DNA of 64,000 bases from contig NW_026857880.1 of the NCBI RefSeq assembly GCF_026571515.1, positions 186,001-250,000 of the forward strand, written 5' to 3'. Shown piece after piece: positions 17,231-25,756 of this stretch (positions are counted from its first letter, which is position 1; the number at the start of each line of letters is the position of its first letter). The notes under the pieces were generated by a model. The model was not told the origin of the DNA and did not search any database. It saw only the letters and a list, made by a program, of their open reading frames with translations. Both the position numbers and the translations under genes were made by a program. The stretch is from Ruditapes philippinarum (Eukaryota).

Positions 17231-20200
17231 AAAACTACAAATCTAAAAAGAAACATATAACATCAATGATTTTTAAAGTTGAAAAACAATATGTAACATA
17301 TTTTACCATTTAACTGCTCAATTTGTTATAAGTGTTTTCCCTGCTTTTAATTTTGAACGGCCAAATTATTATTTTTGCATGTTTCTTACATGTGCATATG
17401 AATTGTATTTGATTATATATCAAGCCCGGTGCAAAAACAAAAACAAACAAAAACAACAACAAAAAAAAAACTCAACTATAAGTCATTTGATAAAAATGTA
17501 TTTTGAGTATAATTTCTCCATAGCTATATTTATTCTTAGTGTTGTCCAGTAGGATTGCAGTTGTGATCAAAGTGATAAACCAAACTAAGTGCATGCAATT
17601 ATATATATGTACATTATTATATAATACAATTTTCAAACATAGAAAAATATGTAAAATATGTACTGCAATGTATTATATGAAATCACCTAAATATATGCAT
17701 TCATTTCTTATTGTAAAATTTGACTTAAACTTTATAGAAAATAATTTTTTATTACCTCCCTTTATTTACATGAAATGTTAATTTCGGTATTATCTTTATA
17801 AATAATGCTTTTGGAACTAACAATATTGATAAATCTTAATTTGAGCATCATATTAATTATTCAAAACCATAAAAAATTGTGTTACAGGATCTTTAATTTG
17901 ACTGTTCATAAAAGTAATTTGATTTAAAACACTTATAAACTTTAACCTATACATATTTGAATGACTGAATTAATAAACATATAAAATTATATATGAAGAT
18001 AATTTACAATAATCAAATTTATCTATTCATTTACATAATATTAGCTCAGACGTGCACCTCAGATAACAGATAAAAATGGAAGCTCTACCTACTCGTTGAG
18101 TCATGTAACCCTTAATCTACAGAACCGAAGTGAGCAGACCGTACCAACAAAGAATCAGGTCAGTATTTACAAAGATTTATGAAAATTAACGGGAAATTTC
18201 AAATTTTTCACACACTAGGTCAGAAATTCACGAATAATTCATGAAGTCTATTTTCACGAAATTTAAGTGACGCAAAAAAATTCCCAATCTGCAGTAAGCT
18301 GATAAAGGAATCATGTAAACATGTGCGGTAATAATTTGATATGGAATTTGTCTTTCGGGCGATCTTTTAAAAGCCAAAGTCTTATAAGATAAATATTTTA
18401 CTGTAAAGTAGTGTAATGTTAAATTTGTAAGACAATCAAAAACCCATATCTTTGTAAGACAAATGTAGGAGGGTAAGTGATTCATTCAACCAACCGGACC
18501 AACCCCTCTCTACCGACCCACTTTATAAAATCCCCTCCCCCATTCCATACGAATGGCTTTTATACAAATGTCATAAACAAAAGTTATTTATCATTGCCAA
18601 ACATAACTAAAACAGTTACCTGTAACTTCCACACTGATTAAAATCCATCCGATAAAAGTCTCCCCGACACATTTAATGACCCTAGATAACATGACCCGAG
18701 AAAATGTTTACCTCATCGGACTTAAACATGTAAATAAATTTTCAATTGACAAATGAATATATATGGATTATCTACACTTATAGATTATCCTACGTGAAGT
18801 AAATTAAAACACATACAAGTTTAAACATGTTAAATACAAATAACAAAAATATAAAAAAATAAAAAACTCATAAAAAACAAAATTAATATTGTTCTGTATA
18901 TGACTATCAATTATACAGCATTCATAGTCATAATTATAGTCCCTTATCTGATATTATAAGCAATAAAAAATAGGAGTGGCATTCTAGTGATGCTGATTAC
19001 AAAACAAAGGGGGTGGGGGTTACATATGATAAATTATTTTACTTCAGTTTAAACATAATCAGAGACCAAAACTTATCATCAAGATTGTCTCCAAAATAAA
19101 AATAAGTAAATGAAAACCTTCCAAACAAATGCCAAATGTAAAGTTTTAATCAATACCTTCAATACTTTTTTTCAAATTATTGTTTGGGTAGATATTAAAA
19201 GTAATGTCGTCATTTGTTTCCTTTCACTATTTTTTTATAAATATGTGAAATTTAAATAGATAGTCTAGAAGTTAAACTCCTAACAAGCATTAACATTACA
19301 TTTACCGAATCACAAAGGGAGGTAATTGAAAAAATTAACGTAGAAATATTATAGTTCTTGGACATTGCCCTTCCTCTCACTTATCATTTTTCTTGCGTGA
19401 AGTTTTTCTTCAATTACTTTGATTGCGTAAAATTTAAATCAAATTCCTTCCATACTTTTCAAGTTAGAGTATGACGTACGGACGAACTTACAAACCGACA
19501 AGACGCCGACTATTATGCTCTAGTCATAGTTGCGTCAGTCTTCTCTTAAGTAAATAAGGAATTTTAGCCTAAAAGTACCGACATATATCCACATGAATAC
19601 AAATAAGAAATAGCTATCGCAACTTCTCGATACATTGAGCCTTTTGTCTGCTACATTACTAACTAAACATAAATTTTATGGTAGTCAGTCTTATACAGAT
19701 GAAATATTTATGATATTTATGATTTATAAATACTGTTCCTACATGCATGTACATAGACAAAAAGTAAAGCTTTCGTGCAAACAGTTATCGATAATTAAAT
19801 CTATTACAGAATAGATCCTAAAAAGTATTGAATTTTTACAGATATTGAGAAAATTAAAATATAATCGTTTTTAGAAAACATTACGATATTTTTTTACGAT
19901 ATTCGAACAAAAAAATATCCTAGATTTTTACTGATGCCTCTTAAATACTGTATTTTACATATCGTCGGTTGGGAGTCAAAAGGTCGTAACTCATTTCAAG
20001 AAATTTTACAGGAGACCACTTTTTTCTACTTGTTAGCTTACAGTAAAACATTTAGCCTTGTGTTTAAAGATAAACAATATTCACCAGATGCGCATATGAA
20101 TAACGTATAATGTTTGCCTACCCGTATTATTCAAGGGCCATAACTATGAGATACGATGTTTTGTCAAATTCTAAGACCGAGTTACGACATTTTACACTTA

Positions 20201-20299
20201 TACTTACATGTAATAAATGAATGTTTTGATTAATATGCTTGCTGTTTTGTTATTAATTATTCATGCCTTACTAAATAAAACTATTAAATATAGGTGAAA

Positions 20300-20530
20300 T
20301 TCCAATTTTGAGGTTTTATGTCCGTTCTTAACAATCTTGCAGTCCTACAGGCGGGTAGATTCCAAACCAGCTTTCTTGGAAAGTACAAGTTCTAGAATCC
20401 CTTCAACACACAGTAATAAATGTTCTCAAAGAAAGATCCATGGTTGGTAGCTAGGCTCCAACCTATGACCCCCAGTCGGCGTGAGAAACTGCAGTGATTT
20501 CATGTGGGTGACCTTGATGCGGTTGTAGTA
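20300..20530 (-). mobile_element. Degenerate SINE-like fragment inside the Sola1 element
   Basis: Resembles the reverse-oriented SINE fragments elsewhere in the window (ggctccaacct...gtgatttc...gacctt head region). Confidence 0.35.
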
Positions 20531-20575
20531 CCAGAAAAACATATCATTTCAAGTTTTAATTGGTCAAAATTAAAG

Positions 20576-21045
20576 CCATCCGTATTACAGTATCAAAGTT
20601 TTATTCAAACTGAGCAACAAATAACCGAACATTTTGTTTTAGTACAGTAACACAGTTATAACACAATATGAACTGCACTAAAAAACAGTAAAAGAAACAC
20701 TCCGTGCTATAAAGACTGTCCGCCTTAGAGTCATCCGTATTAAAGAATCAAAGTTTTATTCAAACTGATCAACAAATAGCCAAACATTTTGTTTTAATGC
20801 AGTAACACAATTATAACACAATATGAACTGTACTACAATACAGTAAAAGAAACACTCCGTGCTATGAAGATTCAGCCTTGGAGTCATCCGTATTACAGTA
20901 TTAAAGTTCTATTCAAACTGATCAACAAATAACCGAAAATTTTGTTTTAATACAGTAACACAATTTTAACACAATATGAACTGTAATACAAAACAGTAAA
21001 AGAAACACTTTGTCTTATAACGACTGTCAGCCTTAAAGTCATACA
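20576..21045. repeat. Three ~153-bp tandem repeats in the Sola1 region downstream of the transposase
   Basis: Units beginning g(t/c)catccgtatt at ~20576, ~20730 and ~20883, each containing tattcaaactga and aacacaatatgaactg. Confidence 0.9.
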
Positions 21046-21286
21046 AGATTAAGTTTTTCATTTTCAGCATTAATGATTTCTTGCAAATAAAAAAAAATCA
21101 TATTCATTTAGAACATTATGATATGGCACAACATACTCACAACTAAACATAAAACATGTACTATAATAATAAAACTGGCCGGAATTCAGAACTTAAGGCT
21201 GCAACGATATGAATGTACTGAACATGGAGCAAACATACTATAATTATGTATACATCTGCAATCGCTCTTCAAAAATCCTTTCACAA

Positions 21287-23994
21287 TTAATAGCTAAGGT
21301 TGTCGTAGAATCCATGAAAATCTCGAGGTATCACACTTTTGAGCTCTTGAAGATGTTCATACTTGGACGCCTTTATTTTCAGGGGACCGTCATGCAGCTG
21401 CGCTGGTTCATCGTGTAGGTAGGTGTAGTCAGTTTTTCGTGCCTTGCGGGGGAAATCTGTTAATTGGCCGTCGAATGAGAGCTTGTATTGTACAGTCCCA
21501 TCTGGGTTGCAATGCAATACGCGCAGATCAGTTACCACTGGATCTCCTACTTTACTTCCTGGCCTTATTGACGAGTAATAAGATAGCTCAGAATACTTCC
21601 TGAAGAAACTATTATCTACATAATGAACTGTATAGGGCTGACTTGGTCTGGCAGAAGCTAATGAGTCAACATAGTTTTGGGGCACATAGATATTCTTGTT
21701 TTTAATTTTTCTCTCCACAACACTGTGCACCGCATCTACTTCTATTTGGGTGTGACCCTTTTCTAAATATTTTTGTGTTATTTCAATTCCAATTTTTTTA
21801 GATATGTGGCATAATGTATTTGTAAGTATACTGTTTCTATTCTGATATCCACAGCCATCGCTAAACACTATTACATGTTTAATGGCACTGTCCTTTAACA
21901 CAGCAGATTCAATGTAACTAGCAACACAACTAGCAAATGAGTTTGCGGATAAATCACCTTCACCCTCATGCCAAAAAAAGCATGTAACTTCATTAGTTGC
22001 CAGATCGAAAATCGTGAAATTGTGACACGCCAGTTTAGTTTTGTAATATAACGCACTTGCATTAAGTCTTGGTGACAAAAGCACAGACTGCAGGTCCATG
22101 GTTATTACTCTAATAGAAGTATCGGATTGTGCTAGTTCTTTATCTCGATCTTTTTCTGCTCTTGCAGCAGTTTTTCTCTGTTGATGAGCCTCAAACTGCT
22201 CATCAGATATGGAACCAACCTGATGGCCACAACAAACATCACACTGATCCTTCTTCGGTTTATATAGTCCCAAATTCATTCGTGAAAATTTTTCCTCCAC
22301 AAGGCGTCTACTGGCTATTTTGTCAACACATTGTCTTTTATATTCATTATACAAGGCACTAAACGTATCGAATACTGGCTCAAGATACCGCTTAGTACTA
22401 TAGATGACCGGCAATAATGAGATTCCATTTTCGGCAGCGATAAGAGAAAGTTACGAACACTTTCTCTCAAAGCACTATGCCTTTCAGCTTGAGCTCGCTT
22501 GCGTCCCTCTGTAGGAATTAAAAAGACATGTAGAATATTAAAAATGAAATTATTTACAGCACAATTACAGTACAGAAACAGTATGTTCACAAATATCACT
22601 TTTTGCTCGTGTAAGTATTGTGCATTTCTTGATTAATTCTTATTAGAAGTATAATCAATGATGCAATATGAAGTATAATTATGTATGTCTGTGATATTGC
22701 TATTGATGTATCTTGATCCATATAATATTTTTGTGATATCTTGTGAATGTGATCGTGTGATTCTGGTGATATTTGTTTTTGATACTTTTCCTATGATAAA
22801 TATGTTTTTACATTGATGTCTTTCTGTCTGTGATATTCTCCTGTCTGTGATATTACTTTATATAATTTACCTATATCATTTTAAGTGTTTTTAAACTATA
22901 TAATATATTTATTGTAAATTAAATGTATGCATTATAAATTGAATATTTTTACAATAATTATTTATACCTGATGATGTCGATTTCTCAGGAATACCAGAAG
23001 TTGAGTTGTTTACCCATCCATAGACTGTTCTCTCGCCAATTCCAAGCGTCGATAGAAACATATTTTTGCAGACGCGCACCCTCTCGCCATCTACTAGTAG
23101 AAAATACCTAAAGCTCTGACTTCTTCTACTGTTTTCTACAGTTTTTACATTGACCGCTTCTGACCCTACAAGTGAGTTTACATAAACTTTTCTTCCATCC
23201 CACGTCATGTTTTTCCAAAAATTTGAGAATATGATTTTTCTGTTATTTTCTGTAATCTTAGCACATTGTTTAACGCCTGGTTTTTTACATCGCTTGGAAC
23301 AATTGCTTTGTGTCAGAATGCGTTCTGGTTTTTCCTCCTGAAGACCCCATTTGCCGTCAACCTTTTTCAGACCTTTGTATTTTTCTCCTTCCATGCGGAG
23401 ACGTTTTGCAGTTTTCCTTTTACATTCTGGTTTCTTCTTTGCTCGTTTCTGTGGTGCATTTACATCGGTTTCAACATTTGTATTGGTTTCAACAACTTCC
23501 TCGTGATCTATGACATCACTGTTATCAGAAGACGAATCACCCGAGTCCCGTTGCAGCTCATAGTCAGGGTCATATAACGTATCATCAAAATCATAGAATT
23601 TCTCCTCCTCCAATTCAGTGGCTATGAGCTCGCTAACATCTTGTAATTGAGAATCGGCATATTCAAAACTACTCAAAACACTTAAACCTTGATTAATCAC
23701 TTTGCCAACATTTTCTACGTTTGCATCTTGAGCAGGTAATTGTCTACAATTTTCAGCTGAATCCTTACATTCTGCATCAATATTATTATTATCGGCTTTC
23801 AATTCACTCTTATCAGCAACATTTTCTACTTCAAAATCAGCAGGTAGTTGAGTACAGTCTTTGGAAGAATCTATGCATTCTGCATCATTTATTGTGTAGT
23901 CACTGAAATTGTTATTATCGTCAGTTAATTCACTTCTTTTAGATTGTTTCTGTAAGGATAACTGAAGTAATAGTTTACCTCTAGACAACGCCAT
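21287..23994 (-). pseudogene. Sola1-type DDE/D transposase, 2 exons, ~748 aa if repaired; one frameshift
   Basis: Exon 23994-22968 (MALSRGK..., TCAG|gt) and exon 22508-21287 (cctacag|AG), phase 1. Motifs RVCKNMFLSTLGI, ESHYCR, PKKDQCDVC, MDLQ, YYKTKLACHNF, WHEGEG, SDGCGYQNRN, GHTQIEVDAVH. The frame breaks at TATA 22399-22402, between ESHYCRSS and STKRYLE. Confidence 0.85.
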
Positions 23995-23995
23995 C

Positions 23996-24328
23996 TTAAA
24001 AGTTTGTTGCACTTCTACCTGGCTCGCACTTAGGGCAATGGATGCCGTTTTCTCTCAAATCCTCAAAGTGAGACTGATTTAAGTGTTCGTCAGGAAATGT
24101 TGGGTGAATGCAATGTATATGATAGTATCTTGAACATTCTTCAAAGAGACATCTAACGTAGAACGTACCGTCTGGTAATGTAAGTAAAAATGGTCCTACA
24201 TTAACAATTTGCTGAAGTAAAAATATTAAGCTATTGAAATCGGGTTTGTACTGACAAACGTGGCACTTGTAAGATTGAATATTCGTCTCTGATACTGATT
24301 CCGTGTCACTTTCACCGGAGTAAGACAT
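23996..24328 (-). CDS. PHD-finger (C4HC3) protein encoded inside Sola1, upstream of the transposase, 110 aa
   Basis: C-x2-C-x34-C-x4-C-x4-H-x2-C-x24-C-x2-C (CHVC...CLFEECSRYYHIHC...CPKC); strong splice acceptor tctttttcag 2 nt before the ATG; stop codon 1 nt before the transposase ATG. Confidence 0.75.
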   Translation of the reverse strand: MSYSGESDTESVSETNIQSYKCHVCQYKPDFNSLIFLLQQIVNVGPFLLTLPDGTFYVRCLFEECSRYYHIHCIHPTFPDEHLNQSHFEDLRENGIHCPKCEPGRSATNF

Positions 24329-25308
24329 CCCTGAAAAAGATAAATGTGCAATAGATATTATTTTGTCTTTTAAATTGTCTCAGAAATAATACATCAAATA
24401 TCTATATAGCGACAAAAAGTCGTATCTCGATTTTAGCAAAAAAACAATAACAGTGCAAAATGTTGTATCTCATGTTTTGATTTTAAATTTCATTTTTATA
24501 GGTAAACGTCAATATACAAATGTGAATAGCAAGCATATTTAAAGACTTAGTATGGTGTGTTGTGAAATATTCCTTCAAAATGTCTGTGGTGAAATGAATG
24601 CATTTCAGAAATTGAAAAATATCCCACTCACATTAGCATCCCAAAGCCAGTAGCAATTAATTCATATTTATTTGCACATGACTGTGACATACGAAGAGCA
24701 TTTAATGACTAAAGCACCTTAACACAGCTTATGTACTAATAACAGTTTAATATAATGATAAAAAGCATACCTTTCCATCCAAATGTTTGCGCTCTTCAGA
24801 AAATTTTGAGATACGATGTTTTGACCGGGAAAAAAATAGACCAATTGTAATACGACATTTCGTCATGTGCCTGTACTGAAAAAACTGATTGGCCTAGAGT
24901 TACAACAATTAAACATAAAATCGGGCATCACTTTACAAAACTATATAAATCAAAAGGTCATTTTCCAAAAATATCGGAGTTACGACCTTTTGACTCCCAA
25001 CCGACGATATATATACCTATATAACAATATTATATAACAATTGAACCAAAAAGAGCCTAAAAGTAAACAAATACTAATCTCTCCTAGATAAAGTGAAATG
25101 TTTACAATAAATTGTGCTTCAATTTTGCATCTTAAAAAAAAATAAACATATTTTGAATACCAATATTAATGTTTAAGAACTCAAAATGCAATTCTTCTTT
25201 TTTTATCTTTTTTTTCTTTCTTTTTTTTGATGGGGGCAGGGGGGTCTTTTTTTAAATGATTTTGTTTGTTTATGTATGCATTACTTGTTATGCTGTGTAT
25301 ATTTTCAG

Positions 25309-25756
25309 GGAGGCATTTGTCAAACTTGCCCATCTAGAAGGCAAACGCAAAGATGAGGTCCTTGAGACGTCACATAGACTGTGGAATAATTTCATTTTCC
25401 GAGGGAAACCCGGACCAATTACTGAACAAGAATTCATTGATATGACGAACAATGAGTATAAAGAAGATAGGCGTAAGTTTACAGAGAAGGTCAGAAAAGA
25501 TTGTACGGATGATGTGAGTTGTTTCGACTATAAGAAACAAGGCTTTGTTACCGAGGAAGAGTTTTTGACAGGGTGTAAGGCGGCTGGTATGGAGAATGAA
25601 CAATGGAACAAGGATTTCTTCCGAATCTTCAACCCCGTTGAAGGGAAGATCGAAGTCAATGTCATGGTTGAAGCGTGGGTTAGGTTTCTTACGGAAGAGG
25701 ACAGCTCTAAAAAGGATTTGATAATGGAATGTCTACAGACAGGAGATAACGCTTGA
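25309..25756 (+). CDS. SCP-like EF-hand paralog (SCP-B), terminal exon only; first coding exon not found
   Basis: Acceptor attttcag|G GAG (phase 2, same as SCP-A); open to TGA; shares IFRGK, ITEQEF.DM, TE.EF, AWV.F and EDSSK.D motifs with SCP-A; EF loop DYKKQGFVTEEE. Confidence 0.75.

Follow-up and report, generated by a model that had tools for sequence, protein, structure and literature searches.

We analyzed a 64-kb stretch of the Ruditapes philippinarum genome (contig NW_026857880.1; hereafter, the window, meaning the whole stretch), which carries on its minus strand a 5,044-bp transposon (19963-25006) with two abutting open reading frames (ORFs), a short one coding for a predicted zinc finger protein (ORF1) and, directly downstream, the transposase. 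All features of the element given below are on the minus strand. Its ends are perfect terminal inverted repeats (TIRs) of 30 nucleotides (nt) beginning with CGTCGG, the 3' TIR at 19963-19992 and the 5' TIR at 24977-25006. A search of the window with the 28-nt core of the TIR returned two exact matches with no mismatches, compared with none expected by chance. The tetranucleotide ATAT flanks the element on both sides, at 19959-19962 (the 3' side as transcribed) and 25007-25010 (the 5' side), without an assigned strand, and is interpreted as a target-site duplication (TSD). The original prediction, made from the letters of this window, described perfect TIRs enclosing a 110-codon ORF with the full C4HC3 pattern of a PHD finger, joined to a transposase ORF through the letters TTT-TAA-G-ATG, and all of these features were recovered here.

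ORF1 occupies 23996-24328 and consists of 110 codons (23999-24328) and a TAA stop (23996-23998). A single G (23995) separates this stop from the transposase start codon (23994-23992). The transposase is encoded in two exons, the first at 22968-23994 (342 codons, with a GT donor at 22967) and the second, which contains the catalytic core, at 21287-22508, ending with a TAA stop at 21287-21289. They are separated by a predicted phase 1 GT...AG intron (22509-22967), which is flanked by two high-scoring segment pairs in the tblastn search.

Conservation of the junction between ORF1 and the transposase

In the window, ORF1 ends with AAC TTT TAA, followed by the G and the ATG; in the +1 frame, the same letters read TTT AAG ATG (MQQTFKMALSRG). 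A DNA search of the 1.4-Gb source assembly identified three further copies of the element, 98%, 98% and 86% identical to the window copy. All three keep TTTTAAGATG and none has a fused TTT AAG ATG, the form that, if present in other copies, would have refuted the original prediction; in one decayed copy among the three, an extra T is present beside many other indels. The four copies of this family (lineage A) are 86-98% identical, so that their agreement at the junction says little.

In the 86%-identical copy (L004; G000:C2678:48957-52440), the segment that joins the 5' subterminal region to the ORF1 start codon is shorter by about 590 bp, so that the TIR lies about 90 nt from ORF1, and a 36-nt deletion removes the last Cys pair of the finger; TTTTAAGATG is kept in this copy.

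A protein search of the same genome with the 110-residue ORF yielded 42 matches with 45-69% identity, which share contigs with matches to the transposase core and lie upstream of them. Extraction of the junctions revealed at least six diverged lineages in the source genome, and a metagenome scan of another sample added three. All lineages have an ORF1 of 108-115 codons that opens with M-S-(Y)-S-G-(E/D)-S-D-T-E-S, and in nine lineages it stops exactly six codons past a conserved C-E-P-G motif. The last sense codon, the stop codon and the distance to the transposase ATG differ among lineages: TTT TAA and 1 nt (G) in lineage A (frame offset +1), TAT TAA and 7 nt in lineage B (+1), CAT TAA and 2 nt in lineage C (+2), TAT TAA and 13 nt in lineage D (+1), TAT TAG and 24 nt in lineage E (0), TAC TGA and 23 nt in lineage F (+2), and, in the metagenomic lineages, TAC TGA and 2 nt in M1 (+2) and TAC TAA and 31 nt in M2 (+1). 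Thus, the slippery TTT before the stop is confined to the lineage of the window. The spacers of nine lineages, including one with an F-box ORF in place of ORF1 (see below), measure 1, 2, 2, 7, 9, 13, 23, 24 and 31 nt, that is, no more than 31 nt in all lineages despite saturated synonymous divergence. The two-ORF layout is also found in intact elements, namely, L065, with an ORF1 of 108 residues and a transposase of 786 residues, and L066, with an ORF1 of 110 residues and a transposase of 1,312 residues. The comparison of lineages argues that ORF1 and the transposase are very probably two separate, conserved cistrons with a real stop codon between them.

Selection on ORF1 and identity of its domain

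Across all 21 lineage pairs, nonsynonymous divergence of ORF1 (pN) is 0.20-0.31 compared with a synonymous divergence (pS) of 0.75-1.0, which is saturated; the pN/pS ratio is about 0.3, and the reading frame is uninterrupted in all of these lineages. In an alignment of five lineages, 45 columns are invariant. Judging by these divergences, ORF1 is under strong purifying selection along active lineages. The proposal that the PHD ORF is a conserved second component beside the transposase is therefore upheld, with conservation in at least nine lineages.

The predicted ligands of the finger in the window copy follow the pattern C22-x2-C25-x34-C60-x4-C65-x4-H70-x2-C73-x24-C98-x2-C101, that is, C4HC3. 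Across 15 ORF1 sequences, conservation is 90% or higher at C60, C65, H70, C73, C98 and C101, and the PHD-type signature (W/Y)-(F/Y)-H-x2-C is conserved as well. The first loop contains a 34-residue insertion with a helix. An intron within this long loop was considered and ruled out, given that all lineages conserve its amino acid sequence.

An AlphaFold model of ORF1, built from the 15-sequence alignment, has a mean predicted local distance difference test score (pLDDT) of 75.8 and appears to fold like a PHD finger, with weak match scores. PHD fingers make up the top Foldseek matches of this model and all of its 50 best VIA-align matches, including the fingers of MLL1 (PHD3; Z 4.8), ARID5, Pygopus, Alfin-like proteins, PHF8 and BPTF; for the Alfin-like protein AL1, 52 of 52 residues were aligned with a root-mean-square deviation of 2.3 Å. 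The nearest clusters in the ESM Atlas are all PHD families (0.85-0.89). In Pfam, the match of ORF1 to PHD_NSD (E=1.7e-4) falls just short of the curated cut-off. A profile search with ORF1 against the PDB sequences returned nothing significant. We accept ORF1 as a predicted PHD-type cross-brace zinc finger given that these lines of evidence, each weak by itself, all agree. The best structural matches, to the PHD fingers of Pygopus, Alfin-like and MLL proteins (Z 4.1-4.8), share with ORF1 the C-x3/4-C-x4-H-x2-C core and the aromatic residue before the His, whereas the sequence identity to them is 14-25%, and the 34-residue insertion with a helix in the first loop is a difference of ORF1. That the ORF1 protein (ORF1p) specifically reads histones, by analogy with such fingers, is possible, although we consider it somewhat unlikely.

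The N-terminal tail of ORF1, ahead of the finger, is acidic and rich in Ser and Thr. An acidic motif in it (residues 4-15; 24284-24319 in the window), S-G-x-S-D-T-E-S-x2-E-T, is invariant among five lineages and is recognizable in the distant relatives P0008 and P0010. From its sequence, it looks like a phosphorylation cluster or a short linear interaction motif.

The transposase and the Sola1-like character of the element

The transposase ATG opens a frame of 361 codons that begins with MALSRGK. Exon 1 encodes, in this order, a conserved N-terminus (MALSRGKLLLQLSL), an acidic region and a Cys-rich, helix-turn-helix-like region. Exon 2, delineated by tblastn and conserved motifs, matches Pfam DUF7869 (E=3.6e-7; 30.4 bits, cut-off 26), the sole Pfam match of the catalytic region, and contains candidate acidic catalytic residues within the conserved motifs MDLQ, SDGC and ME-x-DS-x-HS. 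The predicted intron between the exons is present in lineages A and D and has no counterpart in lineages B and C, which have the intronless ORFs of 1,312 (L066) and 786 (L065) residues, respectively. For the intact transposase of lineage C, 45 homologues were found in limpet, clam, moths, beetles and fish, and most of these begin with M-x-S-R-G-K-x-L-x-Q-L-A-L, the motif that follows the ATG in the window. The ORF1 domain was not found in any of these 45 homologues. Because the N-terminal motif is conserved even in homologues without this domain, the comparison indicates that the transposase ATG is a true, ancient start.

The window copy of the transposase contains one frameshift near 22405 (22395-22410), where the tblastn alignment with an intact relative changes frame at about 22400, between the conserved motifs ESHYCRSS and KRYLEPVF. 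ORF1 and transposase exon 1 are intact, and a full-length enzyme cannot be encoded; because of this frameshift, the window copy is probably non-autonomous.

The great length of the intact transposase of lineage B (L066:1400-5350, minus strand; G000:C15381), 1,312 residues, is due to dozens of tandem repeats of about 12 residues (N-E-M/I-N-V-K/N-S/G-A-C-D-A-S/R) in its N-terminal region.

A 4-bp AWWT TSD is a hallmark of Sola1, a superfamily of eukaryotic DNA transposons (Bao, Jurka and Kapitonov 2009, as cited in PMC3845634), and curated bivalve Sola1 elements have a mean length of 5,445 bp (PMC10294476). ATAT flanks not only the window copy but also another copy (L067) and elements of lineage D (L069), lineage B (L066) and the F-box lineage (L071). 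The original prediction assigned the element to Sola1; the TSD, the TIRs and the size of about 5 kb fit this assignment, and so does the large transposase with candidate acidic catalytic residues. On the basis of these features, we call the element Sola1-like. The difference from Sola1 as described in the literature that we found, where the transposase is alone, is the conserved second cistron 1-31 nt upstream of the transposase ATG.

Sister elements with an F-box/LRR ORF

In sister elements, an ORF with F-box-like and leucine-rich repeat (LRR) regions takes the place of the PHD ORF. One such element (L071:2344-7691; G000:C4655) has an ATAT TSD, TIRs spaced by about 5.3 kb, and a transposase ORF of 809 residues (L071:4041-6467), which is intact. 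Its match to the Pfam F-box-like domain is above the cut-off (E=7.5e-10), and the stop of the F-box exon (L071:3327-4028) is located 9 nt 5' of the transposase ATG. This exon begins at a splice acceptor, without an ATG, such that the first coding exon would lie upstream. About 80 matches to the F-box ORF were detected across the genome, many lying 5' of Sola1-like transposase matches. A single-sequence structure model of the F-box ORF has a pLDDT of 37 and is unusable.

When the catalytic cores (L005-L034, L075) were placed in a quick maximum-likelihood tree, PHD-bearing and F-box-bearing lineages came out interleaved; in particular, lineages B and M1 group with the F-box locus L021, with support of 98 in the Shimodaira-Hasegawa-like approximate likelihood ratio test, and the tree requires at least three changes of ORF1 type. 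This topology hints that ORF1 modules might have been exchanged between transposase lineages. A variant with an OTU domain upstream of the transposase was not confirmed: in a genome-wide scan for OTU domains, only contig C6672 had both an OTU match and a transposase match, with the two about 5 kb apart.

Translation of the transposase

A pyrimidine tract followed by YAG is located 2-45 nt 5' of the ORF1 ATG in all seven lineages compared, which argues for a conserved leader intron that would make ORF1 the first cistron of a spliced mRNA. In the window, this predicted intron spans about 440 nt (24331-24770), from the donor AAG|GTATGC (24771/24770) to a long pyrimidine tract with a CAG acceptor that ends 2 nt 5' of the ORF1 ATG, as read from the sequence. 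A leader exon near the 5' TIR would thus be spliced to the acceptor just upstream of ORF1, yielding a single mRNA with ORF1 first and the transposase second. Ribosomes would complete ORF1 and terminate, and a minority would restart at the transposase ATG, which lies only a few nucleotides further 3', resulting in plentiful ORF1p and scarce transposase. ORF1p itself might act in the nucleus as a cofactor, bound to histone tails or to another chromatin protein, and guide or license transposition or blunt host silencing, by analogy with the PHD finger of RAG2, the Myb partner of Harbinger and VANC.

Reinitiation after long ORFs, as in LINE-1, SART1 and caliciviruses, is reported to require a stop and a start within about 20-30 nt of each other (PMC10275272). 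The junctions analyzed here show this spacing, given that their spacers are about 30 nt or less. The context of the putative restart ATG mostly includes A at -3 and G at +4. Among frameshifting, reinitiation and splicing, the three routes to the transposase named in the original prediction, reinitiation appears to fit the comparative data best. We estimate the chance that the transposase is made by termination-reinitiation at slightly less than even, and consider the explanation as a whole, a Sola1-like element with a bicistronic ORF1-transposase mRNA translated by reinitiation, an even call and the best available.

Several observations weigh against this explanation. Folding of 90-nt RNA windows before, across and after the stop in eight lineages revealed no stable structure (z -1.44 to +1.21), and viral and SART1 reinitiation usually needs RNA structure. 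No conserved motif complementary to 18S rRNA, resembling the termination upstream ribosome-binding site, was found near the junction; UGGGA occurs in one lineage only, through codon choice, and the synonymous sites of ORF1 show no conservation. In animals, reinitiation after an ORF of 110 codons is normally inefficient. The window copy itself has the frameshift in its transposase. With regard to the domain, the Pfam matches of ORF1 to PHD_NSD (E=1.7e-4; 22.3 bits, cut-off 23.9) and to PF00628 (13.7 bits, cut-off 24) are below the gathering thresholds, and the structural scores are low in absolute terms (Foldseek E of 0.14 or greater; Z 3.2-4.8), although the domains have only 50-60 residues.

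In lineage E (L051), the leader acceptor is followed by a 12-codon upstream ORF, the stop of which is 2 nt 5' of the ORF1 ATG, a second stop-then-ATG arrangement in what would be the same mRNA.

The strongest competitor, which we regard as unlikely but worth serious consideration, places the two ORFs on different mRNAs, either because the leader is alternatively spliced to an acceptor towards the 3' end of ORF1 or because transcription of the transposase alone starts from a promoter inside ORF1, as in the case of TnpA and TnpD of En/Spm or M1 and M2 of influenza A; the short spacer would then reflect nothing but compaction of the element. Splicing is evidently in use, judging from the conserved acceptor 5' of ORF1 and the transposase intron of lineages A and D; an AG directly precedes the transposase ATG in the window; in lineages C, E, F and M2, an AG is found no more than about 30 nt 5' of the ATG; and the lack of a detectable reinitiation-promoting RNA structure is in line with this scenario. 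However, there is no AG 5' of the ATG within about 39 nt in lineage D, about 60 nt in M1 and 28 nt in B, and the tract before the AG of the window is poor in pyrimidines (8 of 15 positions, compared with 12 of 15 at the ORF1 acceptor). Splicing to this weak acceptor, suggested in the original prediction, is not borne out, the acceptor not being conserved. Furthermore, a spacer held at 31 nt or less despite synonymous saturation is not expected of independent transcripts.

A different alternative concerns the function of ORF1p, which could be a RING-like ubiquitin ligase finger of the C4HC3 RING-CH type, or a plain adaptor, with a role in the ubiquitin pathway to which the F-box/LRR protein would also belong. 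The identical position of the F-box-like ORF in sister lineages and the fact that C4HC3 is also the ligand pattern of RING-CH are compatible with this possibility, and RING domains of RNF13 and RNF12, along with the C-terminal finger of SLX1, are found among the weak matches. We consider it improbable, with the C-x4-C-x4-H-x2-C spacing and the aromatic signature before the His being characteristic of PHD fingers such as those of Pygo and Alfin, PHD fingers accounting for 50 of the 50 best VIA-align matches and for the ESM Atlas neighbors, and the Pfam scan of ORF1 giving no RINGv match.

Less probable still is that the PHD ORF is passive cargo with no role for the element, either a piece captured from a host gene or what is left of an N-terminal domain that was fused to the transposase until a private indel separated the two. 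Capture of host fragments is known in DNA transposons, hosts commonly have PHD fingers, and the window copy is already damaged elsewhere, but ORF1 has stayed intact in lineages with saturated synonymous sites, its start, length and stop position being unchanged and its pN/pS about 0.3, and it accompanies intact transposases. Moreover, it has no close host paralogue: a search of 1.84 billion protein representatives with the ORF1 profile identified 13 true relatives, all of them short stand-alone ORFs (56-169 residues), none joined to a transposase, whereas the two long matches were bacterial repeat proteins.

The same search bears on the proposal that a +1 slip of the P-site tRNA-Phe on UUU-U, at the UAA stop, produces a PHD-transposase fusion: the TTT TAA G ATG of lineage A would permit the slip into an open +1 frame, and the three other copies, at 86-98% identity of little weight, keep the junction, but the last sense codon is TTT, TAT, CAT or TAC and the stop TAA, TAG or TGA depending on the lineage, the offsets (+1, +2 or 0) and spacers (1-31 nt) vary, the eight folded lineages show no RNA structure near the junction, and there is no fused homologue among the 1.84 billion representatives, so that the model is largely refuted and retains only a marginal chance.

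Several further routes were considered and set aside. A private indel or assembly error that broke a fusion gene is ruled out because at least nine lineages, intact elements among them, conserve the stop. Splicing that would fuse ORF1 to the transposase is ruled out by the distance of 1-31 nt (it would require a 24-nt 'intron' in the window) and by the conservation of the Met-initiated N-terminus across species. Stop codon readthrough could apply only to lineage E and the F-box locus, where the ORFs are in frame, and a lineage E variant has a further in-frame stop. Leaky scanning is unlikely because ORF1 contains 3-10 further internal ATGs.

Comparison with known systems

The bicistronic arrangement proposed here resembles those of LINE-1 and SART1, the latter with a UAAUG stop-start, in which a small ORF1 is followed by the ORF of the enzyme in variable frames. 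Low-level synthesis of the downstream protein through reinitiation is expected for elements of this type (PMC10275272). The differences are that LINE-1 and SART1 move through an RNA intermediate and their ORF1p binds the RNA of the element, whereas the present elements are of the cut-and-paste type and have a zinc finger ORF1, and that SART1 needs a downstream RNA structure, which was not detected here. Termination-reinitiation is also proposed by analogy with caliciviruses.

A transposase with a separate PHD partner protein is known from RAG1/RAG2 and from ProtoRAG and Transib elements with a RAG2-like gene. The PHD finger of RAG2 reads H3K4me3 and licenses cleavage. RAG2-like proteins differ from ORF1p in being large Kelch-repeat proteins with a C-terminal PHD finger, encoded by a separate gene in the opposite orientation; ORF1 encodes a stand-alone finger of 110 residues on the same strand as the transposase and abuts it, and the superfamilies (Transib and Sola1) are unrelated.

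Accessory proteins are encoded beside the transposase also in PIF/Harbinger (a Myb-like ORF1), MuDR (mudrB), En/Spm (TnpA/TnpD) and VANDAL21 (VANC), where they are needed for DNA binding, nuclear import or anti-silencing. These two-gene transposons differ from the elements described here in using their own promoters or alternative splicing and in the domains involved (Myb/SANT and others as opposed to PHD or F-box); to our knowledge, none of them is a stop-then-ATG bicistron. The literature that was searched for Sola1 with PHD, F-box or DUF7869 did not contain a description of this arrangement, and the tight two-gene layout of ORF1 and transposase seems to be unusual and undescribed.

We know of few eukaryotic cut-and-paste transposons with accessory genes; the precedents, each of them instructive, include the Myb partner of Harbinger, which led to HARBI1/NAIF1, RAG2, where a PHD partner couples the transposase to chromatin, and VANC, a transposon-encoded anti-silencing factor. 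The present analysis extends this list by a Sola1-like clade in which a second cistron is conserved under purifying selection, of the PHD type in some lineages and of the F-box/LRR type in others. Such a clade lends itself to studying how host chromatin and ubiquitin pathways are read or manipulated by DNA transposons. If reinitiation operates, it would be a rare case for an animal nuclear gene after a long ORF and a simple means of setting the ratio of cofactor to transposase. The comparison also does away with programmed frameshifting, an attractive but mistaken idea.

A broader and more speculative possibility, which we put forward by analogy with RAG2-PHD, VANC and viral F-box silencing suppressors and consider rather doubtful in its entirety, is that ORF1 is a module interfacing with the host. 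Under this scenario, a clade of bicistronic Sola1-like transposons in marine invertebrates would carry a swappable ORF1, PHD-type or F-box/LRR, that is translated first, with the transposase produced at a low level from the same nuclear mRNA by structure-independent reinitiation; the ORF1 proteins would target or license integration according to chromatin state or disable silencing factors, and the modules would be exchanged between transposase lineages.

Other features of the element and its surroundings

The region between the predicted leader intron and the 5' TIR (24771-24976) is interpreted from its sequence as a putative leader exon with the promoter region, and contains short subterminal repeats, CGTATCTC and GAGATACG. 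Short motifs of the CGTATCTC and GAGATACG type recur close to both ends of the element and may be binding sites of the transposase. The 3' non-coding part contains a tandem repeat (20570-21042) with a 155-nt unit, 3.1 copies and 87% matches.

About 250 bp beyond the 5' end of the transposon, on the plus strand of the window (25256-25756), lies a terminal exon coding for an EF-hand protein similar to sarcoplasmic calcium-binding protein (SCP), preceded by a pyrimidine tract. The transposon appears to sit in an intron or an intergenic spacer of an SCP gene cluster.

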